DNA of 64,000 nucleotides from Saccostrea echinata (GCF_033153115.1 NW_026889794.1:5146001-5210000), one strand, 5' to 3'. Numbered from the stretch's first letter, positions 21,351 to 30,351 are shown. Notes: a model not told the origin generated them from the letters alone. Numbers and translations: made by a program.

Positions 21351-24086
21351 AACTTACTTGCTTCTAAGTATTTGAAAAACTTATTGTGATTTCCTGAATA
21401 TAAAATAATTTTTCATTTAAAAAAAAAAGTGCCTCACTAAGTAGGTGGGAATATAATTGTGATGATTTGACAGCTAAGAAAAATATTACGACACAAATTT
21501 AAAATACATGTAGTAGGAAAATTACACTGGATGTTAATACCTAGATTGGGACCACAGGGCTTTAGATCGCTCTAATTGAATTGACAAACTGGGAGTATAA
21601 AAATGTAAAGGTGTGAACACTGTGGGACTTCTCAGATAAGGTGCCCAATTTTACAAATGAAATACTAATAAATCAAATTATGAAAATTAAATTATATTTT
21701 CAATTCATATCTATTCATATAGACAATCTACATTACTACCAAAGTTTATTTCAAAATTCTGTATACTTCTATTATATCTCTGTCTATCTGTTCGCACGAG
21801 TCCATTCGCCTAGAGTCCATTCACCAGAATGCTCATTCGCCCTGAACCCTGTTCGCCATATATCATATTTGCTCCATTGTAAATATTATATGTCAACATT
21901 TCCGTTGAATTTTCAGTCATTTCTTATTATTTTTTGTTTTTGGCTAATTAATAGATCTAGTAAACAATACATATTCTCTTGAAAATCAATTAATATCAAA
22001 TTTTTTTTTGTAAATTAATAGGTCTAGTAAACAATTTATATTTTCTTGACTTTATTTCCGATTTCAAAGACGTAATTGGTTTAAGTGTTGTTAATTTTAA
22101 GACAGTAAATATTAGAGAACACCTTCTTTGTTTTGTTTTTTTTTAAAGATTTGTGTTATGTTTTGAAAATGATTAAGGAAATTGAGATGTTTATAAGCTA
22201 TCTTAATTGGGGATGAGCAGCGGATTTATTTTTTTTATTCCCAACTTAATATAACATTATATATAACGTTACTTATGAATTAACAAGAATTACATAGACT
22301 TCTACAATTTAAATTCATCTGTTTTATTTTTCTTCATCTATACTGTATGTTCGCCAACTTTGGATGTACATTGAAACCAGTATAATCCGACGTGCACTGG
22401 GAGTCAAATTTTGTGTTGGAATAGACAGGGTGTCGGATTGCACAGTGTAAAAAAAACATGGAAAATAGTAAAATGGGATTGAAATTTAACGTCAGAATTC
22501 ACAGTGTGACGGATTGCACAGGTGTCGGATTAGACAGTTAAATAATAAAATATAATTTACACAGAAAAATTCATGAAATGCAGTAAAATCGAAGTAAATT
22601 ACGAAAATTAACCGACTAACATATTTAGGGCGAACGGACTTTGGGCGAACATGTTTTAGAGCGAACGGGAATGAGGATGAACGGCGTGAAGGGCGAACGC
22701 GTTTTAGGGCGAACAAATATACATTCATCTCATTTGAGCAATAATGGTCCCAACCTGTTAAACAGTGTCTACTTATCAGGAATGTATCCTGGCCAAACAA
22801 CCCTGAAACTCTCGAGCTTTATCAGTGTCTTTTAAACTAATAAAACTAATAGTGAGCGCAGCGAGTGGCTCGACACTGCGAGCTCTAACGACAACACCTG
22901 GGCGAAGAGAAAATTCGGACTACTGCACATTCATTCAATAGAATTTTTTCTGCAGTAATTCTGACCCACAATGCATCGTTTCTTGTTCTCGCTGCTAACT
23001 TCATTCACGCGGTGACAACAACTAAAAATTCACACAAAATAAACTCACCTTAATTTAATGGATATTGCATGCAGATAGTAGATTAAACGTTCTTTGTTAA
23101 AATATTTGCACTTTTTAAACTTTGTTTATGGAAATGCAGCTAACATACGACATCATGTGATGTCACAGTCTAGACGTTCCAAATGTCTCGTGCGGTTTGA
23201 AGAGGCGGATCATAATAATGAATATTCTCTATTGAGAAGTTGATGGCTCATTTTAATACTCCCCCTCAACTTCTCTACGAAAGGCCTAATAAAAGCAGTT
23301 CAGAAATTGACTAAATGAAGAACCAAAACCCGGGTCCCACTTCGATCGGTGTTTTAGGATTGATGCATTATCATAGACATATTTTGGATGCACAGATGTT
23401 GTTTTGCGATGGAAATGCGATTAAAAATACCGATTCTGCTGACTTGAAAAACATTCATCACGGTAGAACACTTACTCGCGATATCTGTGTCACCGGATTG
23501 GTTTATTCATTCAAAACTGTGTTTGAACCCGGTTGACCTCTAAGAAAGTCCAATACTTTTTATCCGGATAAATTGGATTAAATGTTTCAGTGTTAAATAG
23601 TTATCCGGAGAAATAGTTTTAGACTTTTTTAGAGATCGAACCCAGTTTTTAATGAATAAACGAATCCGGTGACACAGGTATCGCAAGTAAGTGTTCTACC
23701 GTGATGAATGTTTTTTAAGTCAGCAGAATCGGTATTTTTAATCGCATTTCCATTGCAAAACAACATCTGTGCATCCAAAATATGTCTACGAAGTGGGACC
23801 CGGTTTTGGTTCTTCATTTAGTCAATTTCTGAACTGCTTTTATTAGGCCTTTCGTAGAGAAGTTGAGGGGGAGTATTAACAGGTCCAGCACAATCTCTTG
23901 ATTAAGCTATATAGCTTTATCTAGCTATATAGCTTGATAAAGCTATTGAGAATAGCTTTATTAAGCTATTTGGAATGTGAAATATTAAAATAAAATTATT
24001 AAAAATAAACACGAGAGAGTCGCATTATGAGTACTTATCAACAAGTTCATCCGTGCATAACAATTACTCACACACTAAAATTAAGG

Positions 24087-24094
24087 TATAAAAG
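24087..24094 (+). promoter_or_regulatory. TATA box in the left TIR, facing the transposase
   Basis: TATAAAAG about 30 bp before the inner TIR edge; candidate UTR intron 24291-24553 ahead of the ATG at 24561. Confidence 0.5.
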
Positions 24095-24560
24095 CGATGC
24101 GTGTGGGGCGCTCACCTTATTGAAAAGTTTGTTGTTGACAATGAAACGTTGGGAAATCGATGATTTAAGTGTTTATGTGAAAAAAATCATGAAAACTAAC
24201 CCACTGGAGCTTCGTTAGTTAAATTCTCTCCTGGCGCTCTACACCGGATATGCTGTCTTCAACGTAGTTGCAGAAGAAACACGAATAACGGTAATTTACC
24301 CGTCATCTTCTTGTAAAGTATGGAAACGCATTTTTATTAATAATACATAAATGAATTGTTGATATGAAAGTTATAACGGTGATCAATAAGGGAAGATTTT
24401 GATTACAATTTAAGAAAGGGAATAAATTAATCGTATAATATATTATTTTAGTGCATATTTAAGACAGAAAATGCATAATTTATATTATATGATTATTTTA
24501 TTTGAGGGGGGTGGGGGGTGGGGTGTTAGTAGACAACATTTAATTATTTTCAGGATAACA

Positions 24561-29327: not shown

Positions 29328-29847
29328 AATAATTATTTTATTTTCTTACTTCAATATAATAAATATTCAATCCCTTGTCTTCTTTAATAGACAAAGTAAT
29401 TGAAAAAAATAATGGGTTACAAAGACATTAATTTTAATACTACGGTGCTTCCATAGAATCTGACCCGGAAGATGAAGATCTGCCTGATTCAGTACCAACG
29501 CTTTAGTATTGATCGTGCATTTCCTGTGTATGGCGACTAGGGCTTCCAAGTCACATGTACTTCAAATTGTGAGTGTTGTCATGGATTTTAAAGCTATAAT
29601 TTGGTACTTTTGTACACAGTTTCGTAAGCTTTTGCACAAAATATGCATTGTTAAATGTCCAAAATTTTGATGAAGGCAATGATGAACCTTCTAACTCTCG
29701 GTGATTAATAATATGTTACGTGATAGAGAAAAGAAATATATACTTACCATTATGCGATTAATTTCTTTTTTTACACTTCTTTATTTTTTTTATACTTCGT
29801 TCAATACACTTGAAAATTTCAATAAGATGAGCGCCCCACACGCATCG

Positions 29848-29855
29848 CTTTTATA
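29848..29855 (-). promoter_or_regulatory. TATA box in the right TIR, facing the MADS-PHD gene
   Basis: Mirror TATAAAAG; consensus donor ATG|GTAAGT on the - strand at 29747, consistent with a short first exon. Confidence 0.5.
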
Positions 29856-30351
29856 CCTTAATTTTAGTGTGTGAGTAATTGTTATGCACGGATGAACTTG
29901 TTGATAAGTACTCATAATGCGACTCTCTCGTGTTTATTTTTAATAATTTTATTTTAATATTTCACATTCCAAATAGCTTAATAAAGCTATTCTCAATAGC
30001 TTTATCAAGCTATATAGCTAGATAAAGCTATATAGCTTAATCAAGAGATTGTGCTGGACCTGATTAAAACGAGCCATCAACTTCTCAACAGAGAATAAAT
30101 AATGAAGTGAACACTGCGCTCGCCCCAACGGTCGCACCGTCAACATATTAAAAAATGAATAAATACACATCGAGCTCAATTAATGAAACAATCGATAGAG
30201 TGGAAAAACAAACACACTTACACAGCACACATTCGCATTCACATTGTCCTTCGTTTCAGCAATTTAAACCGGATATAGCTTTTCTGTATTAAACAAAAAC
30301 AAATTTAGTTAGGCTTATCAGTTCCGGAATTCACGAAATTCCTTTGAATAA

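Follow-up and report, generated by a model that had tools for sequence, protein, structure and literature searches.

A young, probably mobile oyster DNA transposon that interleaves a transposase gene, plausibly of distant Academ kinship, with a MADS-PHD gene

Does the 6183-bp element at positions 23880–30062 of C45:5146001–5210000, in the 923-Mb Saccostrea echinata assembly, still move, and to which group of DNA transposons does it belong? The window analysed here is the whole of this 64,000-nucleotide stretch, and a sequence-only reading of it had proposed a young, possibly active transposon of an uncertain Academ/DUF6589-like lineage, with a 5-bp target site duplication (TSD) and a MADS-PHD partner gene. 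Our own reading, which we hold with somewhat better than even confidence, is that the element is an autonomous cut-and-paste DNA transposon, related to Academ, that transposed very recently in S. echinata. To our knowledge Academ is among the least characterised of the eukaryotic DNA transposon superfamilies, and we know of no member that has been shown to move and of no mechanism for any. Two lineages have been described, which differ in the length of the TSD and in the accessory enzyme. TSDs of 3–4 bp are given for AcademX and of 9–10 bp for AcademH (PMC10045372, citing Kojima 2020).

The element is bounded by terminal inverted repeats (TIRs) of 246 nt each, at 23880–24125 (left, plus strand, beginning 5'-CAGG) and 29817–30062 (right, minus strand). 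Direct comparison gives 245 complementary positions out of 246, the single mismatch that had been counted before lying at TIR position 236; similarity stops sharply at position 247, and the termini of the element read 5'-CAGG...CCTG-3'. ATTAA stands on both flanks, at 23875–23879 and, on the right, at 30063–30067. The insertion lies in the right arm of a host miniature inverted-repeat transposable element (MITE), the left part of which occupies 23223–23879 and the remainder 30063–30097. One arm of this MITE (23223–23333) is uninterrupted and its partner is split into 23799–23879 and 30063–30097; the pairings of the two pieces overlap on the intact arm by exactly 5 nt (23253–23257), and ATTAA is present there once. 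The intact arm therefore serves as a proxy for the empty site, against which the exact ATTAA duplication read from the window is real and 5 bp long. The host MITE (23223–23879 plus 30063–30097) has a nested, hairpin-like structure of its own, further inverted repeats lying inside it at 23371–23526/23636–23791 (94%) and 23535–23571/23601–23637.

Three full copies of the element are found in the genome, on C45, at C25:887803–893985 and at C1:50216317–50222481. They are 99.9% alike, with 4–7 substitutions per ~5.9 kb between any pair and nine variable positions among the three when N runs and simple repeats are excluded. Their TSDs differ (ATTAA on C45, CAAAG on C25 and CTTAA on C1) and their flanks are unrelated, at a random-level identity of 25–30%; a haplotig or segmental duplication as the origin of the three copies is ruled out by these two observations. 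The C25 copy is nested in a related MITE that has a 5-bp TSD of its own, ATAAG. A family of ~680-bp MITEs, for which a first look gave more than 1000 candidates, has TIR positions 1–92 in common with the element at 91–92% identity. Seventeen of 20 sampled independent insertions of this family have a perfect 5-bp TSD, and lengths of 3, 4 and 6–9 bp fit only 0–1 of the 20. Among these 17 TSDs, 14 have T at position 2 and 13 have A at position 4, a loose NTNAN preference. The 5-bp length put forward from a single insertion thus holds for all three full copies, for the outer MITE in which one of them is nested and for 17 of the 20 MITEs sampled.

Three near-identical copies with unrelated flanks and different 5-bp TSDs, together with spliced transcript-like contigs, agree with the proposal of a young and possibly active element, and we regard it, from these comparisons of sequence, as young and probably mobile. 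Two points count against present activity. It is read from the near-identity of the copies, neither an excision footprint nor a polymorphism of presence and absence having been seen, and the runs that hold the spliced contigs are only presumed to be RNA.

The contigs come from four public runs of two studies, whose RNA nature is only guessed in the record; the runs that bear them are too small for a three-copy element to be assembled from DNA. The transposase gene was mapped by exon-by-exon tblastn with P0002, the S. cucullata orthologue (84% identical) that served as guide, with P0008 and with two intronless paralogues; throughout this work the exons of the window were searched singly or through natural relatives. 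It comprises eight plus-strand exons, which match the paralogues exon for exon and amount to ~852 codons, with a stop at 29504–29506. In the frames that homology and the spliced contigs define, none of the eight is interrupted, as had been claimed for the visible exons.

Exon 1 (24561–25914), which is covered by contigs, encodes an N-terminal CxCxxH...CxxC module, a helical domain, the first catalytic D (25275–25277), the second D (25806–25808) and an invariant H (25890–25892). It is separated from the visible part of exon 2 (26077–26208, placed by homology and its joint to exon 3) by a first N run (25932–26076), and in three runs 25914 is joined to 26077 with 15 further letters between. Exon 3 (26286–26394) is reached by the GT..AG joint 26208>26286, its 3' end being taken from P0002 homology and a GT donor, with no contig that has a sense joint there. 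Exon 4 (26536–26765), which holds the FRAGxRRNN region of the insertion domain, is connected by the GT..AG joint 26765>27296 to exon 5 (27296–27438), which carries the catalytic E (27340–27342) within DFILEAKN and ends in a GC donor. The joint 27438>28422, with 9 further letters between, is present in one run and crosses a second N run (28294–28421). The visible part of exon 6 (28422–28815) matches residues 877–981 of the intronless paralogue L052 (E 1e-6). Exon 7 (28909–29031), whose 5' end follows from the frame and an AG acceptor, is linked by the GT..AG joint 29031>29457 to exon 8 (29457–29506), an acidic tail with the stop codon that is supported by contigs and an open frame.

Spliced contigs cross both N runs, and both joints stay in frame (1354+15+2 = 3x457; 9 = 3x3). 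N run 1 is therefore taken to cover the remainder of intron 1 with the first 15 nt of exon 2, and N run 2, on the plus strand, the last part of intron 5 with the initial 9 nt of exon 6; on the minus strand N run 2 holds the start of exon 2 of the companion gene described below. The C25 copy is exactly 6183 bp long, equal to the window copy counted with its N runs, which are therefore probably of true length. The contigs differ from the window at 26356, 26597 and 28644 where these positions are covered (28644 is uncovered in run X4), and the letters that they show at 26356 and 26597 occur in none of the three genomic copies. The expressed elements are accordingly additional copies, or alleles that other individuals or close relatives carry.

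What kind of enzyme does this gene encode? Four motifs had been proposed to hold candidate catalytic residues, FDNN (25272–25283), GCDG (25800–25811), GLGH (25881–25892) and DFILEAKN (27328–27351). The fold was tested on natural relatives of the window protein, namely P0010 (530 residues), a window-clade member 42% identical to exon 1 whose AlphaFold model has a predicted local distance difference test (pLDDT) score of 90.6 and a predicted template-modelling score of 0.87, and the open reading frame (ORF) of L051, a 1054-residue intronless paralogue (pLDDT 83.7). In the P0010 model FDNNQ lies on strand 1 of a five-stranded sheet and GCDG after strand 4; an invariant GH begins the helix after strand 5, and DFxLE lies on a helix that follows a long all-helical insertion. 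Such a placement of D, D and E characterises DDE transposases with an RNase H-like fold, which is present in both models. The proposed D, D and E are thus predicted, from a natural relative, to lie where that fold requires, and the H of GLGH is invariant. As modelled, the transposase is a DDE enzyme whose RNase H-like fold is interrupted by an all-helical insertion domain. The family to which it belongs is distributed across molluscs.

In an unfiltered structural search the best solved match to the P0010 model was the P element transposase (6p5a_A; Z 13.8, 348 residues aligned, root-mean-square deviation 5.7, model residues 30–530). Other Z scores were 10.2 for Hermes, ~10 for retroviral integrase cores, 9.4 for ISCth4, 8.6 for Tn5, 6.4 for RAG1 and 6.3 for BbRAGL, and the L051 model gave the same ranking. 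Over both models RAG1 reached Z 5.0–6.4, and HzTransib was likewise weak (Z 5–6.4). Foldseek with both models returned nothing at E<=0.001, the top rows for P0010 all being DDE transposases with weak E-values, and neither the paralogue nor the window-clade profile found a match among PDB sequences.

Sequence places the family less directly. DUF6589 (PF20231) is the only Pfam family that the relatives of the transposase match, below its cut-off of 27 bits: members of the window clade score 13–22 bits, with E-values of 6.7e-5 for P0008 (profile positions 67–208), 9e-4 for P0009 and 0.03 for P0010, and the paralogue L051 reaches E 2e-5 over profile positions 304–405. Fifteen of 35 proteins of a sister clade also match DUF6589 (best E 1.3e-7, again positions 304–405), a precomputed PF20231 match exists for some of them, and the closest ESM Atlas clusters are of mollusc origin with DUF6589 in 98–99% of members. 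The S. echinata genome holds more than 100 strict DUF6589 matches above the cut-off, and at all four loci inspected these adjoin an opposite-strand gene with Helicase_C and RecQ zinc-binding domains. DUF6589 exons beside a RecQ-type helicase gene are the layout of AcademH, and this ties the Pfam family to the Academ transposase. The four loci are C33:6592000–6601999 (L071), C25:8534000–8543999 (L072), C29:17758000–17767999 (L073) and C9:31168500–31172500 (L074).

A library-wide search with AcademH ORFs gave 2990 clusters, from which 20 long members, all strict DUF6589 proteins, were taken for a profile. Aligned by hhalign with the family of the window transposase, this profile gave E 2.8e-4 and a probability of 41% over 163 columns, and the alignment pairs the catalytic E motifs of the two (D-x3-E). 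AcademH ORFs, the sister clade and the scallop and abalone members of the family also have in common a C2H2 finger that follows the second D. These results suggest that the family is related to Academ through a distant, collinear link, a placement that we consider moderately probable, and the element seems to stand for a previously undescribed lineage alongside the Academ transposons. The label 'uncertain Academ/DUF6589-like' had been apt, with DUF6589 the sole family of the relatives, linked to RecQ in this genome, and the kinship a distant one.

The accessory enzymes of the described lineages are a further point of comparison. No XPG_I match lies near any DUF6589 match, the five XPG_I matches of the genome all being away from the element, and no nuclease or helicase match to Pfam was obtained in the eight ORF and exon pieces of the element that were scanned. 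The element is wholly occupied by the eight transposase exons and three MADS-PHD exons. The sequence-only reading was correct in stating that neither an XPG nuclease nor a RecQ helicase is visible and that the TSD, exactly 5 bp, differs in length from those of AcademX and AcademH.

Several observations weigh against an Academ placement. Searched against Pfam, the exons of the window itself match no family except the PHD finger of the companion, and the DUF6589 matches of the relatives are sub-threshold. The hhalign probability is only 41% and the alignment covers only the C-terminal third of the core; a profile of four AcademH sequences gave a probability of 1%, and a hidden Markov model of the family misses the AcademH ORFs (six-frame ORFs of four loci, best E 0.1). 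Neither AcademX nor AcademH has this TSD length or this cargo, and the window transposase is without the C2H2 finger that its relatives carry. The basis of comparison is Pfam DUF6589 and the DUF6589/RecQ loci of this genome rather than the reference transposases of Repbase or Dfam. Finally, the CA..TG termini, a TSD within the range of 2–5 bp, its TWA-like centre and a Chapa finger in the sister clade are features of the CMC/Transib side.

The oyster sub-lineage has lost a C2H2 finger of ~37 residues after the second D (25800–25892, compared with P0011 and P0012). The finger is gone and yet three near-identical copies exist, so that it seems to be dispensable for mobility. At the other end of the protein, a strict DUF6589 protein of 1065 residues (P0187) has an N-terminal ZAD-like zinc finger at residues 10–81 (zf-AD, E 1e-5). 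ZAD is related to the first zinc module of the NZD of RAG1 (2026 preprint), and the finger of P0187 suggests that N-termini of ZAD/NZD type may be common in this transposase group.

The structural ranking could also be read as the mark of a separate superfamily-level lineage within the P/hAT/MULE-like structural class, for which the DUF6589 and Chapa signals would be shared modules or chance-level similarity. The strongest evidence is indeed structural, the P element transposase superposing over nearly the whole core; every sequence link to DUF6589 is sub-threshold or of middling probability, and TSD, termini and cargo together match no described superfamily. However, many members independently match DUF6589, in two collinear regions and nothing else, precomputed PF20231 matches exist in the sister clade, DUF6589 clusters are the nearest Atlas neighbours, and hhalign pairs the catalytic E motifs. 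The element also lacks the features of P elements proper: no Pfam match to THAP or Tnp_P_element was found, and its TSD is not of 8 bp, the length that P elements make. A lineage of its own therefore seems to us very unlikely, and kinship with Academ remains the preferred placement.

A second alternative arises from the sister clade. The window clade (A2) and this mollusc-wide clade (A1; Mytilus, Ruditapes and Saccostrea) are homologous from before the first D to past the E (hhalign probability 100%, E 1e-112), with their N-termini unaligned. The A1 profile matches structures of the N-terminal zinc finger of RAG1 (21wb, E 6e-11; also 6oem), and PF12560 is matched by 20 of 35 A1 members. The sister clade joins an NZD/Chapa finger to a P/hAT-like, DUF6589-related core and not to a Transib-like one, and the Aplysia 'N-RAG-TP' element may belong to it. 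Its members include intronless ORFs of 1000–1100 residues, such as L051:1656-4817:- (C1:6129655-6132816) and L052:1532-4654:- (C4). No TIRs were found around the L051 and L052 ORFs within 7-kb loci, and some sister-clade ORFs may accordingly be domesticated genes.

Among transposons, Chapa/NZD has been reported only for Chapaev, Chapaev3 and TransibSU (PMC4411706; bioRxiv 10.64898/2026.01.24.700457). The family might then belong to the Chapaev branch of the CMC/Transib (CMCT) elements, the oyster sub-lineage having lost the Chapa finger and widened its stagger from 3–4 to 5 nt. The PF12560 matches of the sister clade speak for this, as do the CAGG..CCTG ends and the 5-bp TSD, which agree with the CA..TG termini and 2–5 bp TSDs of CMCT elements (PMC12730594), and the T-W-A-like centre of the TSD, which resembles the TWA target of Chapaev3 (PMC4079192). 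The sister clade has in addition a C(2)C after the second D and an H(3)H ~50 residues before the E. In the window clade, however, no Chapa domain is detectable: its profile gave no Chapa/NZD match in the PDB, and only the short CxCxxH...CxxC module is present N-terminally. The window protein and its oyster relatives have neither a Cys pair after GCDG nor an H(3–4)H before the E, and the C(2)C of the relatives, with an H(4)H 12 residues on, is an ordinary C2H2 finger that occurs in strict DUF6589/AcademH ORFs as well. Chapaev elements have 5'-CAC..GTG-3' termini and TSDs of 3–4 bp (PMC4079192, PMC3014272), neither of which is found here. The Pfam models of the RAG1 core and of CACTA gave no match even at E<=10, and RAG1, BbRAGL and HzTransib stand at Z 5–6.4 against 13.8 for the P element transposase and 10.2 for Hermes. 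An N-terminal DNA-binding module can, moreover, pass between transposase families. We consider a Chapaev origin unlikely, and continue with the element as a distant relative of Academ.

The second gene of the element lies on the minus strand. Its exon 1 (29051–29203), within transposase intron 7, contains the ATG and the first half of a MADS box and ends ...RHDSVYKRKTTILKK before a GT donor, at 29051, that is used in two runs. The visible part of exon 2 (28205–28291), the first codons of which are in N run 2, encodes the second half of a MADS-like box with EILIIVKSASGKMSTY strands; the same exon is found on C6 and C54. Exon 3 (27544–28089), covered by contigs at 27716–28024 and 27653–27829, encodes a Ser/Thr/Pro-rich linker, a basic patch, the PHD finger and the stop. 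Exons 2 and 3 of the companion lie inside transposase intron 5, and transposase exons 6 and 7 lie inside companion intron 1, and the two genes are therefore interleaved on opposite strands. The idea that the N-terminal half of the MADS box is hidden in N run 2 is ruled out by the visible exon at 29051–29203.

The PHD finger passes Pfam (PF00628, 26.8 bits, E 5e-6, cut-off 24; PF22908, 26.4 bits). Exon 1 matches only SRF-TF (PF00319), with 16.4 bits and E 0.006 over profile positions 1–22, and the same exon in the C54 paralogue reaches 27 bits, above the cut-off of 26. Exon 2 taken alone has no Pfam match, and its strand motif is kept in three lineages. It counts against the MADS assignment that it rests on half-domains, of which the one in the window scores 16.4 bits where 26 are required. 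Homologues of the PHD exon lie antisense to transposase exons in at least ten divergent copies, down to ~31–36% identity; a partner kept in such divergent copies indicates an old partnership and argues against recent gene capture. Unspliced ORFs of the PHD exon were all that a word search with that exon returned. The MADS-PHD partner named by the sequence-only reading is supported, with a PHD finger above the Pfam cut-off, the N-terminal half of a MADS-like box in a visible exon and the gene found with the transposase over long divergence. That reading had mentioned neither the interleaving of the two genes, nor the CArG-like palindromes of the TIRs described below, nor the RAG1-type finger of the sister clade. 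A search of the published literature found no transposon with a MADS or PHD partner, Repbase and Dfam entries lying outside the comparison, and it seems that no animal transposon encoding a MADS-box protein has been reported before.

Contigs also contain minus-strand (CT..AC) joints, 26673/26791>29051, 26388>26525 and 26210>26303/26309. The isoforms concerned start at the MADS exon donor 29051, skip the remaining MADS-PHD coding exons and overlap transposase exons 2–4 in antisense. The region of antisense joints comprises 26210–26791 and 29051–29199 on the minus strand, and the joint 26388>26525, if read on the plus strand, would give a transposase truncated before its E. On C6 (L056, C6:8594000–8603999) lies a copy whose transposase is 58% identical; its companion keeps the MADS-like exon and has lost the PHD exon, and there seems to be a frame break in its transposase exon 1. 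Just downstream of the element in the window, a 191-bp unit is tandemly duplicated at 30341–30722 with 97% identity.

What might a MADS-like protein do in a transposon? In each TIR the 12-nt palindrome AGCTATATAGCT, which has a CArG-like C-W6-G core, occurs as a pair spaced 18 nt apart; the left pair is at 23905–23934 and is mirrored at 30008–30037. The 64-kb window contains four matches to AGCTATATAGCT, all in the TIRs, where 0.1 would be expected. In addition, the 7-mer AAGCTAT occurs six times at each end of the element. All four palindromes are kept in most MITEs, and the L056 element has the same terminal ~90 nt, both palindromes and the end ...GTACTGGACCTG as in the MITEs. A C-(A/T)6-G core is of the CArG type, which is bound by MADS dimers. 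The core of the palindromes thus points to the companion as a candidate end-binding factor.

We propose a scheme in which a dimer of the MADS-like protein would bind the two AGCTATATAGCT palindromes in each TIR, the companion acting as an accessory end-binding factor like the Myb-like protein of PIF/Harbinger. The PHD finger would tie the complex to histone H3 tails. The target is cut with a 5-nt stagger, which leaves the 5-bp TSD. The same terminal 92 nt could let the element mobilise the ~680-bp MITE family. The boldest version is that of an undescribed two-component transposon in which MADS-PHD binds the TIR palindromes and brings an Academ-like transposase to the ends and to marked chromatin, interleaving locks the two genes together, and NZD/Chapa has moved between unrelated superfamilies; as a whole we regard this as speculative and rather unlikely.

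The companion could instead be a passenger, or a regulator outside the chemistry of transposition, for example a captured transcription factor gene, retained for its effect on the expression of host or element, or an antisense damper of the transposase. The spliced minus-strand contigs that run from donor 29051 through transposase exons 2–4 would fit a damper, no companion gene was found near sister-clade ORFs at the sensitivity used, and the intact-looking C6 copy has lost the PHD exon. On the other hand, the companion frames remain open, the position of the gene relative to the transposase exons is kept down to ~31–36% identity, which indicates long-term co-inheritance under selection, and paired TIR palindromes of MADS-dimer type are kept where the transposase has diverged to 58%. 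We hold a passenger or damper to be possible, if on the doubtful side, and prefer an accessory end-binding role for the companion.

If its placement is right, the element would add a third type of Academ, with a 5-bp TSD and a DNA- and chromatin-reading partner instead of an enzyme. Intact, near-identical copies at three loci, transcript-like contigs and abundant MITE substrates make a direct transposition assay feasible. An interleaved sense/antisense gene pair is a rare arrangement and may couple or restrain the expression of both proteins. A RAG1-type finger on a P/hAT-like core bears on the origin of the non-core region of RAG1, and a transfer of NZD/Chapa between unrelated superfamilies, if true, on how RAG1 obtained its N-terminus.

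How does the element compare with known systems? With RAG1/RAG2 and the RAG-like transposons it shares the 5-bp TSD and an oppositely oriented second gene that ends in a PHD finger, and an N-terminal zinc finger is shared with RAG1 in the sister clade only. In contrast, its core is not RAG1- or Transib-like (Z 5–6.4 and no Pfam RAG1 match), there is no Kelch propeller and the ends have no heptamer-like CACAGTG. PIF/Harbinger likewise combines a transposase with a separate DNA-binding protein, repeated short subterminal motifs, many MITEs and a TWA-like target centre; its transposase is of an unrelated fold class, however, and its partner is Myb/SANT and not MADS-PHD, the role of the partner being an inferred one here.

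In the P element transposase (6p5a, 6pe2), too, a helical domain precedes the RNase H fold and a large insertion separates strand 5 from the E-bearing helix, but identity is 9–11%, the window family has no Pfam THAP and no sign of GTP binding, and TSD lengths differ. With Chapaev, Chapaev3 and the Aplysia 'N-RAG-TP' element there are in common the Chapa/NZD finger of the sister clade, CA..TG ends and a short TSD with a TWA-like centre. Here the window protein differs in having no Chapa, C(2)C or H(3–4)H, CAC..GTG ends are absent and the TSD measures 5 rather than 3–4 bp; in superposition the transposase core also comes closer to P and hAT transposases than to RAG1 or Transib.

From Academ the element differs in its TSD of 5 bp, against the 3–4 bp (AcademX) and 9–10 bp (AcademH) given above, in a MADS-PHD gene that takes the place of the XPG nuclease or RecQ helicase, and in DUF6589 similarity below the cut-off. 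Surveys of bivalves describe many Academ elements, without detail of a MADS or PHD partner, and the curated ones average ~5.6 kb (PMC10294476). The likenesses are that DUF6589 is the sole family of the relatives, that an N-terminal zinc module, a helical domain, a DDE core and, in most members, a C2H2 finger are present, that the E motif aligns, and that the elements are of similar size and belong to a family abundant in bivalves.

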